NCBI RefSeq assembly: GCF_032062105.1
Contig: NW_026941099.1
Span: 1 to 64,000 of the forward strand
DNA from: Saccostrea cucullata
Lineage: Eukaryota
DNA: 64,000 bases
Direction: 5' to 3'
Below, piece by piece: positions 1,511 to 11,885 of this stretch. The position numbers and the translations under genes were made by a program. How positions within the stretch are numbered: position 1 is the first letter of the stretch; each line of letters starts with the position of its first letter. The notes under the pieces are model-generated. The model was not told where the DNA came from, did no database searches, and saw only the letters and a program-made list of their open reading frames with translations.

Positions 1511-2388
1511 TCCATTTGAATTTTAAAGAGCTTTAAATCGGCGACGGATTCAACGCTTAATTTATGCAGTTTTTGTTTTTAATCAAGTAGTGCAAATTAT
1601 TTTTTCTTTATGTCTTAAATCCTGGTTTATTTGAGTAATTCACCACATAAAGATTTTTCATATAATATAATTTTGTAAAATGAAATATGAGGTAGTGACC
1701 CATGCCCACAACCTAGCTTATAATCTAAAACGAAAAGAAGAATTTTAATCAATTTTAAGATAAAAATGTAGTAATCTATTTAGAATATCACTTTATTTCA
1801 ACACAATATTGAATGAGTCTTTTATGTCCCATATTTTCGCCTAATTCTATAAGAACAAACTTTGGTGAATTCAAGACTTTAACACAATAATAATCATTCA
1901 ACACAAGAAGGATAACTCTCTTGACAACAGCTAATGTATACATGAAGATTGCTTTGTGATAAGAAGGGCGTCCATTGCTGGACGGAAAAGAAATTACTCA
2001 ATTGTAAGATATTGCTTTACATGCTTTTTTTCTTAACCAGATGTTTATAATCTATATAGCATTTAAATACTTTATTTGGATTATTTTATGAAATTTATAG
2101 CTGAAAATCGGGAGTCACATTTGTCAATCTACAATATGAAATGAAAGTTTTTTGACGATAGTCTGTATATCTCCAAAAAAAGTTTCCATAAATTTTGTGT
2201 TAATGCTGTAAAGAATCAGTACAAAATGGTTTATGAGATTAATATAATATATGAAGCACTTTAAAATTACTTTCGTTTTCACAGACATTTAAAATAAATA
2301 AAAAAAATAAAGAAAGTAAGTAAAGAAACCCATAAGATTCTTCCAAGATAAATGTTCATGTGTACTTCATTTTTTTTTTAGATTTGAT

Positions 2389-3252
2389 ATGCATCCAATC
2401 TGGAGTGTGCAAGATGTCATCCGATGTGACCTATGTAAGACAGCTATAGTACAGATGTACTGTGATTTCTGTCATGTCAACCTTTGTAAACCCTGTATTG
2501 GAGAACACATTGCTGATGAATATGAGAAACATAAAATTGTCCCATTCCAAAACAAAAAGTCAACTTTAATCTATCCTAAGTGCTCAGTACATCAAACAAA
2601 AGGCAGCGAGTTTCACTGTGAAACGTGCAAAACCTCTGTGTGTTCTCTGTGTGCTATATCTGATACACATAGGGGACACAAAGTTTCACCTCTTTCTGAA
2701 CTCTTTTATTCAAAGAGGAAAGACATAAAAAAAGATACTAGAGAATTAGAAAATTCAATTTGTCCAACGTATGCAGAAATTGCAACTGAATTAGAAACCC
2801 AGATAGCTAACATAGATGGAGAATATGGAGATCTTACAGCAACGTTGATAAAATGTGGAGAAGAATGGCACAGAGAAGTCGACTTAATTGTTCAGAAATT
2901 AAGAATTGAAATAGAAAAAGGAAAAACGAAGCATAATAGTATTCTAAGGGATCATTTGAAAGAAATCAAACAGATACAGACTATTATTGAACAAACACTT
3001 CTAAATCTTCAACAAATTGAAGATTCCAATGATGTTTCTTTGACCATGAATTACATCTCACAAGCCAAGGAATTAAGCAAGCTACCCCCAAAAATTCAAA
3101 TATCACTACCAACTTTTATTTCAAGGACAATAGACACAGAACAGTTTTACAAGCTATTCGGATATTTAACAACATTATCCGTCACAACAGAGGAAAATGG
3201 CTACGAATTGAAGAAACCAAAGATATCAACAAAAGACATGCTGGAGGCACAA
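2389..3252 (+). CDS. TRIM-like B-box1/B-box2/coiled-coil exon (no RING); first coding exon of a predicted TRIM-HSPA12 fusion gene
   Basis: B-box1 CDLC..CDFC..LC..C..H, B-box2 CSVH..C..C....C..C...H.GH, then a heptad-rich helical region. Splice acceptor tttttttag at 2381 just upstream of the ATG. Strong donor CAA|GTAAGT at 3253 (phase 0). Confidence 0.88.
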
Positions 3253-3417
3253 GTAAGTGATATTATTTTAACACAATGATAACATTATTTGTAGCCACAG
3301 ACATTTTTATTTTTGTTAGCTTGGGGTCTCTTTCTTCTCTTTATTCTTGTTTACTGTAAATCCTGGACATATATGGTCTTGGTTAAGAAATCCTTATCAA
3401 TAGTTGTATGCCTTCAG

Positions 3418-5601
3418 ACTGGAGACACAGAAAACATACCCTCTACCATGAAAACAGTCATGGTTGCAGCCATTGACTTTGGTACCACCCATACCAGCAT
3501 TGCATTTTCCTATATACATGAATACGAAAAAGACCCTTTGAAGATCTCGTCCATTAATTGGATTGCAGTCTCCCGAGGTCTGACGAACGTAAAGATCCCC
3601 ACCTGTATTCTGTTCAATAAAGACAAAGTGTTCCACACGTTTGGTTATGATGCGGAGGATAAATATTTAGAACTGGTGGATGCAGGGGAACATGAGGAAT
3701 GGTATTACTTCAAACGGTTCAAGATGTCTCTCTTTAACAAAGAGGCAAGTTCATCTCTTAATCTGTAAAAAATGAAAATTATTTAAAGTGAGGATGGTCT
3801 TGAAGGGGCCGGAATTTTCTCCGTTTATAATGGCGAAATCCTACAATTACTCTGGTATTTGCCAAACATTTCTTAGGGGAGAAACTTCAACTCACTTCTA
3901 TATTTTATAGTAAATTGTATAATTAAAACGGATAAATTTGATGAGAATTTGAAGAATGTTCTTGGTAAAAATTTGAGTGGTTAGAATATGTTTTAAATAT
4001 TTATCAATTTATAGCTTTGTGTACTCATACGATACGATTTAATGTTTTTTTTTTATTAGCGGTGGGTATATACAGTCTACAAATCGGTTTAAATGTTGAA
4101 CATATTTCTTACAGGAACTAATTTCAAAAGCCAGTAAAATAAAATCTATAAACGGGAAAGAGATGTATGCTTTGGATGTGTTTTCTGCAGCCATTGAATT
4201 TTTGAGACATCATCTACTACATATTCTAAAACGACAAGGCTCAAGCATCGAAGAAACTGATATATGCTGGGTCTTAACAGTCCCTCCTTTGTGGGATGAG
4301 CCTGGCAGACAGTTTATGAGAGAAGCGGCATTTAGGGTATAAGCTTTAAACTAGCTTAGAGATATATCAACAACTTTAATAAGATTCATTTTTGTACAAG
4401 AATTCTTTTAAGAAATATATCTTTTAAAAATTTAAGGGTGCCGACTGTGGTACAGAGTATTCATTGCGCAATACTTCGCGCATCATAGTAAAATAAAGAG
4501 TATTTATTATTTTAAAACACTTTTTTCACAAAATTAGTAAAATCTATCACACCAGTATTTTAAATAACTGATTCTTACAGCTAATTTTCAAATAATAGGT
4601 AGATTGACGTAGTACATGTAGTAATGTGTCTGTGACGTTAGGATAGATTGAAGTTCTTAAATAGGGGGGTAAATAAAAATGTCATAAAAAATAAAAGTGT
4701 ACAATATAAGGTCTAGAAATTTTATTTGATTATCACAATTATTTTCCTATTTTTTGTATAAAGAATTTGTGTTTGTCATATTTTGTAATATTCCTTAAAA
4801 ACAGGAATACTTTCACTGATTTTGACATTATGAAGGCGCCCCCCCCCTCCCCCCCCCACCCCTTGGAAACAAGGCGGTAAAATGTTTTGTTTTGTTTTTT
4901 TACTTAAAATGTATAAAATGTTACTCATCACATATTATAACACGAGAAAAAAGTCTATTGTAGTGTTCGTATAATTTGTGTTGAAGAGCGAAATATTAGC
5001 ATTTCCCCATAAAATCCTTTTGTAAATGACCTTTATTTTTAGACGGTTCCCTAAAAATACGCAGACGGAAGTTTTCCCCTAAACTTGATAGTATACTTCA
5101 GTCGATATAAGTTATATATGGTTTAAAATTAACGATTTTCTCTATTGTAGTTTTCACGCAATATAGCTTCAGTCGGCTCCTTTTAAAGTTAATTTAAACT
5201 TTAGAAATGTAAAGAACCATGGAAACTAAAAAACAAAAAAATCACCATTTGCAATGAAAAAAACCCAGAGCCCGATAAATAGGGCTTTCAGTTAAAAAAA
5301 AACTGTAGAATTTTAATTGAGGATGCAGTTTGAAAACATCTTTTAAGAATATATTTGTTTAAGGCTTGCTTACAACTATGATGAGATTTTAATTTGTTTT
5401 TAGGCTGGAATATCCGGGGACCAGTTACTGATAGCACCGGAGCCTGTGGTGGCCTCATTATACTGTAAGCATATCCCCATAGAGAAACTGCAGCCTGAAG
5501 GGGAAAACCAGGAATTCAAGGCATTCTTCAAGGGAAGTAAATTCCTAGTTCTGGATTGTAGACGTAAGCTTTTTTTAAATGCCCTGATACACTGTATATA
5601 G
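3418..5601 (+). CDS. HSPA12 (heat shock 70 kDa protein 12)-like N-terminal nucleotide-binding region; exons 3418-3744, 4115-4336, 5404-5563 (or read-through to stop at 5601)
   Basis: Motifs AAIDFGTT, KIPTCILF, FGYDAE, WYYFKRFKMSL, WVLTVPPLWDEPGRQFMREAA, AGISGDQLLIAPEP and KFLVLDC are typical of HSPA12. The introns between these exons are phase 0 with good acceptors (cag 3417, cag 4114, tag 5403). No downstream exons for the rest of the domain were recognised. Confidence 0.85.
4436..5180. mobile_element. Non-autonomous TIR element (Kolobok/piggyBac-type TTAA flanks) in an HSPA12 intron
   Basis: ttaa-GGGTGCCGACTG ... CAGTCGGCTCC-ttttaa. Confidence 0.55.
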
Positions 5602-6818
5602 CACGCCTTTTATATTATCATTATAGCATATCTTCATCAGAAAACATCTTTCTTACAAGTCAAGTGGTTCAAAAAAAAAAAAAATAAATAATACTCATTG
5701 CGTACCATTAGCCTTTGTTACTATCAAATCAAAAGATTTTTTTGTTTTAATTTTTCATTGACTATTGTTTTGCAAAATTGCTGAAAAAGCTTAACTCCAT
5801 TCAGTCTCTTGATATGCTCTCTGAAATAAAAAAAAAATACTTCATAGAAATATAACTATTTACCTACATCATCAAACCATTATTTGATAAGGATAAGCAT
5901 ACATGTACAGTTTAACCTCTTTATCTCAAACTCGAAAATAAGTCAATATGACAGAATAGTGATATGGAAAATATAAGAATACGAGTAACAAGTAAAAAAA
6001 AATTACAAACGATAAACGTTTAAGGAAAATATTAACTCTATCAAAAATGTGTTCAAGTACAGTTAACAATTCAAATTAAAATCTTACAGAATCATTACAT
6101 GTACGAGTATTATTTTGTTTGCATTCAAAATAATTACGTAAATAAGCAAGAATGCTTAGGAAGTTATCTTAGGGCTAAGACAGATCTTAAGATGAACTAA
6201 CGACATATCTTAGTCTTAAGTGGAGCCAACGTAACTATCGTATCTTAGGAGAGTTCTTAGTCTTAATCCTAACATTTAGTGTAAATGTCTACATGTGCAT
6301 TTATAAATGGAAATGGAGAAGGGAATTAATAAACAATGTTGAATAAAAACATTTATGCAAGTTATGGGAGAAAACATTCTATTGAAAATTTATTAAAGCA
6401 CTGTGGAAATAGACAGAATATAGCAGCAATTTATTTTTTACGAGGGGGGGGGGCATGTGCATGGTGTAGGAGGATGCAGTCACATGGTTGTCCGAAAGAA
6501 GCAATTTCAGTTGCCGGGGGAGGGGGGGGGGGGGGGCAAAGACATACATTTTCAGTTTGGGGTCTGTTATTGTTTTATAATAATGCAAAACATTTACATA
6601 CCTTTAGCTTTCTTTGCAGCTTTACCATGTTTACAAGGCGGTGGGGGTGTTAACTATAATTATATACGTTTAGTTATATACTTTAAGAACTCTGGAGGAC
6701 ATGGCCCCGTGCCCCCGTGCCCCCATGCCCTCCCCCTTCCTACATCACACAGGTACAAGTATGTGATTAAAACCTGGAATTGGAACTTTAAGTTGTGCTT
6801 GTTTATAAAAGTGCTTAA

Positions 6819-7742
6819 GGTAGGATTCTTCTCTGGTTTCTGAATAGATGAAATATTCAATGTATATTTGCTTATATGTCTTATATATTTAGTTGAAAGA
6901 GATTTATAATACCATAGTTTTCTTTCCTCACCACAACCGTACAACTTTGAATAGAAATGGTCAATTGTGTTTGAAAACTAGTAGGAACTATATTTTTGGC
7001 GGAATTGTGGCGTATGAAAATGTCATCTTTTCTGCCTCTCAAAATTATTTTAGAACTATGAATTTAGTTATAATTTTTACACAATCAAAGCCGAGAAGAA
7101 TTTTTCAAATGTTAGCAAAATTAATAATAAAGAACTTAAGTTTTAAAAAATAACAAATAAATATGAATTTCCAAACAAAGTACAATTATGTTAGCTTTTA
7201 AAAGTTTCGACTCTAAGTACAGATTTGAGCCAAAAATCCATAAAAAGTGTTTTTACTCTCTAACTAAACGGTCAAAACTTTTTGTTTTTGTATCATTTTG
7301 TATCTCTATATGACTGCTTTACCATATGTGAAAATCAGAAAAAGTTCAATGTTGGGCGCATATAAAAATAACTTAAATATCCTAAAATTTTAAGAAAAAC
7401 AGAGAAAATTCGGATTAGCCAAAAACCATTTTTGTTAAACTATTTGTATTAATTTGGTAATATCATCTTATAGACCCTATATGGTAATATCTTTTTATGC
7501 AAAAAGAAAAACATTTAATCTTTTGAAATAGAAGACCCTATATCATGAATGGATGCTGTTATTTTTATTCATAATGAGAAGGGAAAAGGTTATGACCTTG
7601 ACCTGACCTTGACTCTTACATAAAACGGTCAAAACTAATCTAACTAATAGCATCACTTAGTAATATTGTCTTCTTTGCTCTGTGAAAATTTCATTAATTT
7701 TTGAATACAAGAAATACAGTTTTGTGTGAGAAGAATCCTACC
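6819..7742. mobile_element. TTAA-flanked MITE (Kolobok-like)
   Basis: TTAA|GGTAGGATTCTTCTC ... GAGAAGAATCCTACC|TTAA: perfect 15-bp TIR with TTAA target duplication. It sits between CTTAAG/CTTAGG-rich repeat tracts (~6155-6270 and ~7743-7880). Confidence 0.8.
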
Positions 7743-7895
7743 TTAAGATGGATTTACGACATCTTAACTTAGGATATTCCTAAGATGCTTTTGTTTTAAA
7801 CCTTTAGACGTATCTTAAGATATTCCTAAGATATGTCCTAAGAAATAATTTAAAACACGTCTTAGGACAAATCTTAGGAAAGAAGATGTGGGAAC

Positions 7896-8609
7896 AAGGC
7901 GTGCAGAATGCCTGTAGCGTCACATATTAAGAAACCATATGCAATATTTGAATTGAGTACTTAAATTAACTTCTAATTATTGAAATTTTTCAAAATATGA
8001 GAAAAAAACTTTCTGAGAGAAAAAAAATTCACGGAAAAAAATTTTTCTTTCATAAAATTATTAGATGGTATCCGTGGGATTCGAATCCTAGCAATAAAAA
8101 CTCGACATATCAATATCATACTGTTTTGAGACTAACGCGTTAACCACTATGCTGCATCAGATATGGTAATTTTGGGCATTTAAATCACGTTTGTGATATG
8201 ACCCGCGACTTAATGGACTTGAAGTATTTCTCACAAAGATGCAAATGTTGTGTCATAAAAGTGTACTTTTAGGATATAGTGGGTCTTCATGTTTTTGTAA
8301 GCCAAAATGTCTATTTTATTGCAAACTTTTAGGATCATCTTTCAAAAAAATGGAGCGAAGAACCACTCATATTGAAAAATTTTGTTAAAGTATGAGAAAA
8401 TGATCGTTTTTGTTCATTTTAGTGTGTGTAAGGCTTTTAAAAGGCAAATATTTTCAGTCTTTGTGAGATTTTTGGAAATTGTAGAGATTGTAGAGATTTT
8501 ACATAAAGTATACTTTAATATTAGATGAAATAGCAAATAAAATTTGGATTTAATTGAGATTAACTTTTTCACTTCTAATCTGTCGCACTATAGGCACTTC
8601 GCCTGCCTT
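7896..8609. mobile_element. Degenerate TIR element carrying a tRNA-like segment
   Basis: Imperfect TIR AGGCGTGCAGAATGCCTGTAGCGTCACA / TGTCGCACTATAGGCACTTCGCCTGCCT. Minus-strand A-box/B-box-like sequence at ~8066-8158. Confidence 0.5.
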
Positions 8610-8693
8610 ATCCCCCATCCTCTTTTCATAAGCATGCCTGCAGATCTTTAAATGTCAATGAAACACATAATTAAATATTAAAATGAGAATGTA

Positions 8694-9554
8694 CGAGGAG
8701 TGATCAACAAGTTCGCGAACTAATTGAATAAGTTCCATAAAACATTACGTGACATGCTCTGAAGCATTCTGTTCATAAACGCTAAAATAATTTCCCAAGT
8801 CTAATATTTCTTACCATGCAAGTAATTTTTTATAACAAGAACAGTCCATTTGTCAAAAATGACCAAATCTCGGAAATAGGATGGCTGGATAGGGATATTC
8901 TTTCCCTGAAAGAGCATGGTGACCATCCCAACCCGAGTCTACTGTCTTAAAAACGTCGTTTATCCAATATGGATATATAGTAGGGGTCTTCTTTTTATTA
9001 TATTTAATATGTTTCGAGTTTAAAGTAAACGTTGTTTTAGGGATTTAATAATGAGATTATTGTTAAGACATACAACTATTTTTCTAGCTGTATCTTCGAT
9101 ATCTTTCATAATAAATTGCCCAACAAAGGAAACATCTCTTCCCCAGCTGCTTGCCATCCCTGGCTTACATAACAAACGTCATTTTAAACACTCTCCCTCT
9201 CTTTAGTTTAACAGTCAATCCAATTTATGATTAAACGTTTGGAATGTCTATTGTCTTCATAATTATTGTATAAATTATATTATAAGATACTTCAAAGGAA
9301 TTCCTAAATTATACGTTAAACTTTACAGCCGTTCGTTGCTCGTGTAAGGCTGTGACCACCATTTTTTGTCACAAGTCACCTACATATTGATGTCATTTTC
9401 AAATTTTGACGTCACAGTGATGGAGAAAATGATTTCTTTTCTTATGCTATTAATAGAACATGTTCACGGATATAAGTGTGACAGATTTCATTCTGGTTTG
9501 AATTGTAGTTGTGTAAATATAGAAATAGTTCGCGAACTTTTTGATCACCCCTCG
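8694..9554. mobile_element. Non-autonomous mariner/Tc1 element
   Basis: TA|CGAGGAGTGATCAACAAGTTCGCGAACTA ... TAGTTCGCGAACTTTTTGATCACCCCTCG|TA: mariner-like TIR with TA target site; no intact transposase. Confidence 0.8.
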
Positions 9555-9892
9555 TATTATTTGATGAATAAATAAGAAGTATCCAATTAAATTAAGGTAC
9601 CAGTGAAATATAATAGAATGAATTTTATTCAGGCAACTAATTCCAGATGAGCAATCGAACTTTCAGCTAATCAAATAATAAGATTATATTTCTGAAAAAG
9701 ATATGACAAAATAAAGAAAAACATGAAAAATTAAAGTAATTTCATATTTTCAAATACAGGCACCAATAAAGCTTAGATTGCTTGGTATACAGGGAAACAA
9801 GCCAAACTGTTTATAGCTCGTTAGGTCAAGTGTTAGGCGAGGCAGTGTGCTCGCAAAAAAAAATCATTCTCGTGTAAATATGGAGAATTTAA

Positions 9893-10634
9893 AGGTGAAT
9901 AGACACTTTATTGAAGTTAATAATCTCTCAAATTTTCTGTATGATATCACGACTTATATATTGCAATAGGATTTCACACAAAAATATATTAAAATTCCTA
10001 TTTCATCTAAGAGTTATTGAAAATTCAAAATTTTGGACGAGTTTGATTGACAAATGCTTGCACTTTCAAAAATTTTAATTTTATCCATATTACTCTAATT
10101 TAGAAAAAGTGGCAATCTTGTTGTGTATTAATGAAAAATAGTAAAACTATATTCCAGAAAATTCAGGTAGAAATGTTCAAAAGCAAAACATACACACATT
10201 AACTTCAGTCCGTACAGTTGTGGTGAGCAGACTTTAACAATTGAACATACCCGGTGAATCGTAAACCTTCACAATAACAGAGCTCGTGCCCCGTTTACAA
10301 AACAAAAAAAAAAAGAAAAACTACGTCTCGAGGGTGTGTTCAATTTGATAAGCACTGTACACAACACTAAGCGCGGAATGACGATACTTCTGAAGGGATT
10401 TTGCTTTCGAACATTTCTACTCTGAAAATAATTATTTTTCTGGATTAAAGTTTTAATATTTTTCATTAATACACAACAAGATCTAACTCATCCAAAAACT
10501 TGAAGTATCAGTACGTTTTAGATGAAATAAGATTTTAAATATTTTTTCGTTTGAAATACTATTACAACTTATAAGTTGTGATATTTTGATATTTTACAGA
10601 AGAAAATTAATTTCAAATCTGTGTCTATGAACCT
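9893..10634. mobile_element. TTAA-flanked MITE with long imperfect TIRs (Kolobok-like)
   Basis: TTAA|AGGTGAATAGACAC ... GTGTCTATGAACCT|TTAA; inverted similarity extends over ~250 bp. Confidence 0.75.
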
Positions 10635-11079
10635 TTAAGAAAGTTCTTAACACTGATAAAAAGTGCTTCCAGGATGTCTTGAAAAATATATCATATAAAA
10701 GTGTGCATATTTGGACTAATCAATTAATTTTCAACATAAGGAACCTGCCTTATTTTCATATGAATAAAAGAGAAAAGACTTTTTATGAGCAAAAATTACT
10801 GTTGTTTACTTACATATGGGGGATTCATGGAAAGATGAATTCTTTTACTCATATTTGGTCTAATATGATGCTTAGAGTATTTTATTCTATTAAAGATAAT
10901 TTAATTAAGTGTAAGAACTGTACAAAACTATTTCTTTTATCTTACTTTTAAGAGGAGATCACTCTCAATCCATAAATTTACCTAATAAATAGAACTCTTT
11001 AATGAGCAGTGATTGGACTTCCTTAAGATTTTATAAAGTAGTAACCAAAACCTGCGATTTTTTTCTTTCTAATCTTGCT

Positions 11080-11395
11080 GTCGCCCGCTTGTCGCAGTGT
11101 TTAGAGCGTCTGCTCTAAAGTCGCGAAATAAGGAGTTGATCCTTACGTCACAGGTTCAAATCCCACTGTGGGACGTGGAGACCGGTCCTTCGGATGAGAC
11201 CGTATAAACCGAGGTCCCGTGTCGCAGTAGGTGCTGGCACGAAAATGATCCCTCCCTGCTCAATGGCCCTGAGTGCCGAGTATAGAACAAAATTTGCAGC
11301 TCTCCATCGGCAAGTGATGGCGTCTCCATATGAGTGATAAATTCTCGAAAGGAACGTTAAACAATATAGTATCGTACAATTTATCAGTCAATCAA
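11080..11395 (+). mobile_element. Full-length tRNA-derived SINE
   Basis: tRNA-like head (GCAGTGTTTAGAGCG ... GGTTCAAATCCCAC), conserved core CTTCGGATGAGACCGTATAAACCGAGGTCC, (CAAT)n-like tail, and 12-bp TSD TCTAATCTTGCT on both sides. Confidence 0.88.
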
Positions 11396-11557
11396 TCTAA
11401 TCTTGCTAATTAAGAGTTCCTGTTTACCTCACAAATAAAAAGTGTCGCCAAAATTGATCTACAGTGATCTGCGGTATTCACATTTTCCTTGCAAACCAAA
11501 ACAATGTTTTTACTGTTATATGGATGTTGTGTAACAGTATAAGATAAACTTACATTA

Positions 11558-11885
11558 ATAGACCAATCCACACTTTACAAAAGTTGTTTCCCTGTGCGGG
11601 GTTAACCAAAAGGTCAAAAGGGAAAGAAACAACATTTCTCCTCTTTATGCTACCAAACATTAGGATGGGCTATGATGAATCCACTGTGTTTAAATTGTTT
11701 TCTTTGGAAGTGTGGGTTGCCCCAACATGGGGTTATCAGTATACACTAATGCAACGATTTTTCCCAGTCAAATGACAAAGTTACAAACCTAAACACTTCA
11801 AAGGGCACTGTGAGGATTCTATGGGTTTATCCCCCAAGATGGCGACCAAGGGACATAACTTTTGAAAAGTGTGGATTGAACTATT
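11558..11885. mobile_element. MITE
   Basis: TIR AATAGACCAATCCACACTTTACAAAAGTT / AACTTTTGAAAAGTGTGGATTGAACTATT. Confidence 0.65.

Follow-up and report, generated by a model that had tools for sequence, protein, structure and literature searches.

TRIMCyp, the TRIM5-cyclophilin A fusion of primates and rodents (PMC4378998, PMC2279257, and PMC6677749), is among the closest described counterparts in layout of the oyster gene family reported here. Both have a B-box/coiled-coil scaffold with a C-terminal module from a protein-folding gene, joined by a new in-frame splice that in the oyster family is predicted. However, the oyster fusion has no RING, it has kept four HSPA12 introns and is not a retrocopy, the client-binding part of its module has been deleted rather than used, and it exists in about 12 copies.

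Two types of bivalve gene correspond to its halves. Oyster RING-less B-box/coiled-coil/NHL proteins (for example, Saccostrea echinata XP_061167921.1; "TRIM2/3/71-like" in RefSeq) represent the source of exon 1, of the splice acceptor ahead of it, and of the upstream DNA. In those genes the exon goes on to encode an NHL propeller, which the fusion lacks. Bivalve HSPA12 (with Saccostrea cucullata XP_062615745.1 and S. echinata XP_061165022.1 as the parent) shares exons 2 to 5, the intron positions, the GC donor of intron 2, and the Hsp70-type ATPase fold with the fusion. In contrast to HSPA12, the fusion has lost a C-terminal β-sandwich of ~138 aa, evolves at an ω of ~0.7 rather than 0.017, and has eroded invariant motif residues. 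M. gigas has 89 HSPA12 genes (PMC11268181). Client binding by human HSPA12A is ADP/ATP dependent, and its substrate-binding domain is the part that was used to demonstrate it (PMC6345817). Crassostrea TRADD-N proteins have variable C termini, including B-box or HSP70 domains, and so resemble the fusion in the shuffling of HSP70 domains into lineage-specific immune-type architectures. Their scaffold is different, and the accessible part of that report (PMC8195603) describes no B-box/coiled-coil-HSPA12 protein. Our literature search, which extended little into subscription journals, found no published description of this architecture.

Results

We analyzed a window of 64,000 nucleotides from S. 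cucullata (contig NW_026941099.1, positions 1 to 64,000 of the forward strand). Its reading frames contain a B-box/coiled-coil and HSPA12 chimera in four stop-free exons totaling 524 codons (288 in 2389 to 3252, 109 in 3418 to 3744, 74 in 4115 to 4336, and 53 in 5404 to 5562/3). Exon 1 ends at the donor CAA/GTAAGT (3252/3253), and exon 2 starts at the acceptor TTCAG/ACT (3417/3418). A preliminary description of the locus had proposed this donor and acceptor, a 165-nt phase 0 intron, and at least 524 codons in four exons, all of which we confirmed. It had also extended the gene to 5601, but the TAG at 5599 to 5601 is the stop met by reading on into intron 4, and the absence of exon 5 had been missed. 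The features of the locus, in window coordinates, are as follows.

2269 to 2280, minus strand: ISRE-like motif (GAAA-NN-GAAA-GT), 120 nt upstream of the ATG
2370 to 2388, plus strand: splice acceptor (AG at 2380 to 2381) and 7-nt 5′ UTR ahead of the ATG; origin in the B-box/NHL donor gene
2389 to 3252, plus strand: coding exon 1, 288 codons; B-box 1 (about codons 13 to 50), B-box 2 (63 to 102), two long helices (about 102 to 211), and a flexible linker; no RING
3247 to 3252, plus strand: fusion breakpoint; the 6 terminal nt of exon 1 correspond to the end of the parent HSPA12 non-coding exon, and NHL-gene similarity stops just upstream
3253 to 3417, plus strand: intron 1 (GT-AG, 165 nt, phase 0), a homologue of the intron in the 5′ UTR of the parent HSPA12 from S. 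echinata
3418 to 3744, plus strand: exon 2, 109 codons; phosphate-1 motif and lobe I of the Hsp70-type ATPase domain
3745 to 4114, plus strand: intron 2, with the same GC-AG borders that the parent gene has
4115 to 4336, plus strand: exon 3, 74 codons; contains a patch with a weak positive-selection signal across copies
5404 to 5563, plus strand: exon 4, 160 nt; E191V and G229R at family-invariant positions
5564 to 11560, plus strand: remnant of intron 4, colinear with intact copies to ~11560
11560 to 11885, no strand assigned: dispersed repeat of ~326 nt with many copies at 89 to 94% identity, located where homology stops

The open reading frame at 2389 to 3279 has two stretches matching Pfam zf-B_box (E = 5e-14), and its start methionine is 12 residues upstream of B-box 1. 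The acceptor at 2380 to 2381 implies a non-coding exon further upstream. Pfam found no RING in exon 1 or in the RefSeq models of complete copies; on this evidence, the protein is not a TRIM. The best public match to exon 2 is a 737-aa S. cucullata protein, XP_062620265.1, with the alignment beginning at its residue 289. Exon 2 starts with 18 nt of former HSPA12 5′ UTR that is coding here, and the parent ATG has become ATA (3436 to 3438). The window copy has only residues 1 to 229 of the 444 in the Hsp70-type ATPase domain.

The 12 best genomic matches to exon 2 (62 to 72% identity) form a distinct group, and all except one have a B-box exon or its remnant 163 to 181 nt upstream. The exception, on contig C10522, is the unfused parent HSPA12, which is 96 to 100% identical per exon to S. 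echinata XP_061165022.1. Once apparent haplotig pairs were merged, there were about 12 fusion loci. Because the same exon pair, spacing (163 to 181 nt), and intact GT..AG were found at all 11 loci that we read, the join is not due to chance; these are independent loci, which also rules out an assembly error as its source. Four complete RefSeq models (XP_062620265.1, XP_062618636.1, XP_062599964.1, and XP_062620275.1) are 735 to 740 aa long with zf-B_box and HSP70 domains, and they are named only "HSPA12-like." A fifth copy (C20505:58153) looks complete from its exon matches. Approximately half of the fusion loci are broken by frameshifts, stops, or deletions. We searched public proteins for the junction, using three of them (P0001, P0156, and P0157) as queries and the window exons one by one. 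These searches found no junction-spanning protein from another species and no transcript-derived protein across the junction, and a metagenome scan produced no match.

Unusual structures were also seen. On contigs C2952 and C9881 (L040 and L041), exon 5 of one copy directly abuts the last 55 nt of the next copy's exon 1, followed by intron 1 and exon 2, a layout that reflects a deletion within a tandem pair. In a RefSeq model on C23634 (P0392), a segment of a Mutator-like transposase is attached to the B-box exon and exon 2, which is probably an annotation artifact from an insertion in intron 2.

The splicing of exon 1 to exon 2 that we propose for this family has strong evolutionary support. 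The GTAAGT donor and CAG acceptor are identical in all seven open copies, whereas the interior of intron 1 is only ~80% identical. That intron has accumulated 11 indels whose lengths are not divisible by three, compared with zero in 1,410 coding bases of exons 1 to 3. We considered whether there might be no fusion, with a short B-box gene ending at 3279 adjoining an HSPA12 gene that starts at the ATG at 3448. RefSeq annotates one copy in this way, and the parent ATG is kept in four of the seven open copies. However, the other three, including the window copy, have lost that ATG and their downstream frame is open nonetheless. Reading through the exon 1 donor also produces tails that differ in length between copies, from 8 to 21 residues, and the two splice sites are invariant around an indel-rich interior. 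Finally, the intron is HSPA12's own, and the B-box exon sits in place of its upstream exon. Two adjoining genes are, in our view, highly improbable. In RefSeq, the exons are joined on C23634, whereas the matching copy on C8765 is annotated as two separate genes; these models are therefore not independent proof. Even so, we are confident that the family is a real translated fusion.

The closest unfused relative of exon 1 is the single-exon B-box/coiled-coil/NHL gene of S. echinata (XP_061167921.1), with 72 to 74% amino acid identity to family members. DNA identity to this gene is 83 to 85% for three paralogues; the window copy, aligned together with the flank upstream of it, has 78%. The similarity ends at codons just upstream of NHL, and relatives of this exon run on into NHL at precisely this position, as the preliminary description had anticipated. 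The next 6 nt, the donor, and the whole of intron 1 align with the end of the 5′ UTR exon and the adjacent intron of the S. echinata parent HSPA12 (72 to 77% over intron 1 and exon 2). Decayed NHL sequence was rejected as an explanation for intron 1, which aligns with the HSPA12 5′ UTR intron. These alignments show a DNA-level fusion, in which a B-box/coiled-coil/NHL gene was joined ~6 nt upstream of the donor of the HSPA12 non-coding exon. With the breakpoint just ahead of that donor, HSPA12's own intron would therefore splice the fusion in frame, and 18 nt of HSPA12 UTR became a linker. The later introns of the fusion copies are homologous to those of the parent HSPA12. Therefore, the fusion arose by recombination, not retrotransposition. 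The earlier proposal that exon shuffling placed an Hsp70-like module on a TRIM scaffold holds for the spliced RING-less B-box/coiled-coil and HSPA12 chimera but not for the TRIM identity.

Synonymous divergence (dS) of the copies is 0.35 to 0.62 from the S. cucullata parent, 0.47 to 0.65 from the S. echinata parent, and 0.25 to 0.32 from each other. The slightly lower dS to the S. cucullata parent, together with the dS among copies, suggests that the fusion arose near or after the split of the two species. This timing has modest tree support, 85/87 for exon 2 and no resolution for exon 3. Among the subset of candidates scored, we found no intact NHL orthologue of the B-box donor in S. cucullata, the best being 73%. 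The 5′ UTR intron of the S. cucullata parent (C10522, L039) no longer resembles that of S. echinata and has a tandem repeat in its place; the older HSPA12 intron is retained in the fusion copies and not in this parent.

HSPA12 sequences have also been joined to other domains. An Argopecten irradians protein (P0060) has an Ig domain and the start of HSPA12, and a protein from a Logan contig (P0061) has HEPN/DZIP3 and a full HSPA12. This suggests that HSPA12 is a recurrent fusion partner. We found no B-boxes in the long HSPA12 proteins that we examined from other bivalves, which have tandem HSPA12 or Ig/HEPN domains.

Exon 5, encoding parent residues 230 to 444, is not in the window, and there is no match to it on the contig. 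Homology in intron 4 of the window copy ends in the dispersed repeat, 100 to 170 nt before the expected exon 5 acceptor. A contig that is 96 to 99% identical to the locus, C2019, shows the same repeat join and is probably its other haplotype. These two concordant contigs rule out an assembly error as the source of the loss. C2019, which like exon 5 of most copies is known from search matches, is one base shorter across exon 4 and has no protein match there; either a frameshift or a slip in the assembly could account for the missing base. The only alternative last exon that qualified downstream was a LINE frame, and it was rejected. Reading through the exon 4 donor adds 12 codons before the TAG, and so the only remaining product of the window copy would be 536 aa with half an ATPase domain. 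The window copy is likely to be non-functional, a probable recent pseudogene. It also looks mosaic, with its upstream region and exon 1 nearest to C20505:58153, and its intron 1 and exon 2 not.

The window has further features. A second dispersed repeat of ~290 nt lies inside intron 4 (11080 to 11370) and has many genomic copies at 88 to 92%. Positions 24540 to 26665 contain broken pieces of a LINE-type reverse transcriptase (RVT_1, E = 3.5e-14). A tandem array at 21500 to 61500 has about nine diverged copies of an exon that encodes a stalk rich in Ser and Thr, a single transmembrane helix, and tyrosine motifs in a cytoplasmic tail. Several of these copies end in a PDZ-like T-S-L, many are frameshifted, and none of the array has a Pfam match over the cutoff.

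All four complete fusion models stop at parent residue 444 to 446. In two copies that we read, codon 445 has changed from TAT to TAA, and a decayed remnant follows it. Exon 5 frames that match the fusion type are all short (221 to 266), compared with ~350 to 450 in other HSPA12 genes. The predicted structure of the parent HSPA12 has an Hsp70 fold with a β-sandwich at residues 446 to 577 (pLDDT 92), and a profile alignment places the cut directly past the equivalent of the BiP interdomain linker. The region missing from the fusions is therefore this C-terminal β-sandwich (~138 aa), the substrate-binding domain. The model of P0157 has two B-boxes, helices at 102 to 158 and 162 to 211 that form a predicted coiled coil downstream of them, a linker of ~70 residues modeled with low confidence, and an ATPase domain that is well formed. 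The ATPase domain of complete paralogues matches Pfam HSP70 and, by Foldseek, the ATPase domains of BiP and DnaK (E ~1e-17).

With the substrate-binding domain absent, this is not a chaperone fusion. The complete protein is a scaffold with a client-less ATPase domain and not a scaffold with a chaperone. This bears on the possibility that it is a restriction factor like TRIMCyp, with the client site of a chaperone recognizing a pathogen protein. The two do share a layout of coiled-coil scaffold and swapped C-terminal module. However, the deleted part is the substrate-binding domain, the very domain with which client binding by human HSPA12A was shown (PMC6345817), and there is no RING. Such a function is barely credible. 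The chaperone swap on the TRIMCyp model that had been suggested for this locus is not supported, given that both domains are lacking and that the fusion originated in DNA recombination with introns rather than in retrotransposition.

The preliminary description had called for dN/dS analysis of both halves. We ran this on open copies, chosen for being open. For exon 1, ω was 0.42 (P = 5e-14 against 1); for exon 2, 0.54 (P = 3e-4); and for exon 3, 0.75 (P = 0.16). Exon 4, for which two broken copies were included, had an ω of 1.05 (P = 0.85). In a branch model of exons 2 to 4, ω was 0.017 on the parent branches and 0.71 on the copy branches (P = 7e-29 for the difference), and the copy value was below 1 (P = 0.003). 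The window branch (0.71) was not distinguishable from other copies or from 1. This shows that the open copies have been under purifying selection, with the ATPase domain far more relaxed than that of the parent. Its dN is 0.18, compared with 0.10 for the B-box half. Site models indicated positive selection in exon 3 only (P = 0.01, one of three tests), mostly around parent residues 132 to 148, and exchange between paralogues could mimic this signal. Positive selection was rejected for exons 1 and 2 (P = 0.12 and 0.29).

We also inspected the DxGTT, EPxAA, DxGGGT, and GGFS motifs and the invariant lysine K95, which from its position would be the equivalent of Hsc70 K71. The four complete models have changed 10 to 15% of family-invariant positions, compared with 35 to 44% of variable ones. 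In every one of them, two or more of the invariant positions K95, E191, A193, G231/T232, G254/G255, and T16/T17 are lost, in different combinations. Nucleotide-contact residues are retained, and none of the four has altered D13, G15, E189, D227, G229-G230, E298, K301, R302, or the GGFSES motif.

One interpretation of this erosion is that the fusion is real but only its B-box/coiled-coil half matters. The ATPase domain would then be folded for stability and drifting, and the family would be mostly a by-product of birth and death by tandem duplication. An ATPase ω of ~0.7, the loss of different invariant residues in each copy, the broken state of about half of the loci, and an exon 4 ω of ~1 (with the two broken copies) would all fit this. 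Against it, exons 2, 3, and 5 have stayed open over a dS of ~0.3 in several copies, the residues listed above are unaltered in every complete model, and overall ω is below 1 (P = 0.003). We consider a drifting ATPase domain somewhat unlikely.

Discussion

Our best overall explanation, which we regard as close to an even call, is that the window contains a truncated copy of a young B-box-coiled coil-ATPase family (~737 aa) whose members may act as a dimeric bait or decoy. The coiled coil would dimerize and display two Hsp70-like ATPase domains. These would still bind nucleotide but lack the client-binding partner, often with damaged catalytic motifs. Proteins that target the ATPase domain of Hsp70, either pathogen factors or host co-chaperones, could then be drawn to them as to a bait or decoy. 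The B-boxes might mediate higher-order assembly or bring in further proteins of the large B-box family. We propose a bait mechanism because hundreds of variable B-box genes make up the family from which the scaffold derives, because the ATPase domain outpaces the scaffold in divergence, and because there is birth-and-death turnover. Plant NLR integrated decoys are host target domains, often catalytically eroded and fast evolving, that are grafted onto an immune scaffold. The oyster fusion is a similar graft of an eroded domain, and the resemblance is an analogy only. HSP70 domains are also present in other oyster immune-type architectures, at least in the accessible part of PMC8195603, which is a further reason for this proposal. 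As an analogy, the bait mechanism taken by itself is possible, at somewhat less than an even chance.

The ISRE-like motif upstream of the ATG is exact in 7 of 11 family copies, with a one-base variant in 3 others and in the S. echinata B-box/NHL relative. The pattern has four matches in the window, compared with 1.2 expected. Such a motif would fit a bait, and it may equally be the pyrimidine tract of the splice acceptor when read on the plus strand, which makes it a weak lead. A more specific version of the proposal is an integrated Hsp70 ATPase decoy on a TRIM-like scaffold, with diversifying baits for the proteins by which pathogens attack or hijack Hsp70, possible control by IRF, and an architecture that arose more than once. 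We think that this combination is unlikely.

A role directed at the host is another possibility. A dimeric, client-less ATPase domain might titrate co-chaperones or HSPA12 partners, or sense ATP/ADP during heat, air exposure, or hypoxia. The retained nucleotide-contact residues and the cut immediately past the linker equivalent would suit this, as would the nucleotide-dependent client binding of human HSPA12A (PMC6345817) and the 89 HSPA12 genes of M. gigas (PMC11268181). However, such partners are conserved in the host, yet the B-box half has changed more slowly than the ATPase domain (dN of 0.10 versus 0.18), and there is no triple heat-shock element in the 450 nt upstream. This also seems an unlikely function, and we continue to prefer a bait or decoy.

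The ESM Atlas has three clusters (67 to 107 members, 1,054 to 1,228 aa, scores of 0.88 to 0.89) with HSP70 and zf-B_box families. A second query returned no usable match. These clusters are leads only, and the combination of B-box and Hsp70 may exist beyond the oyster family.

In this young gene family, the two parents, the point of fusion, the intron and UTR that were taken over, and the loss of a domain can all be read from sequence. The ATPase domain of one of the most constrained oyster genes (ω of 0.017) now sits on an immune-type scaffold that evolves fast. The family also suggests that some of the genes behind the "HSP70 expansion" that surveys report for bivalves do not encode chaperones. 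If the ATPase domain does act as a bait, then it would point to a new class of targets in oyster immunity.
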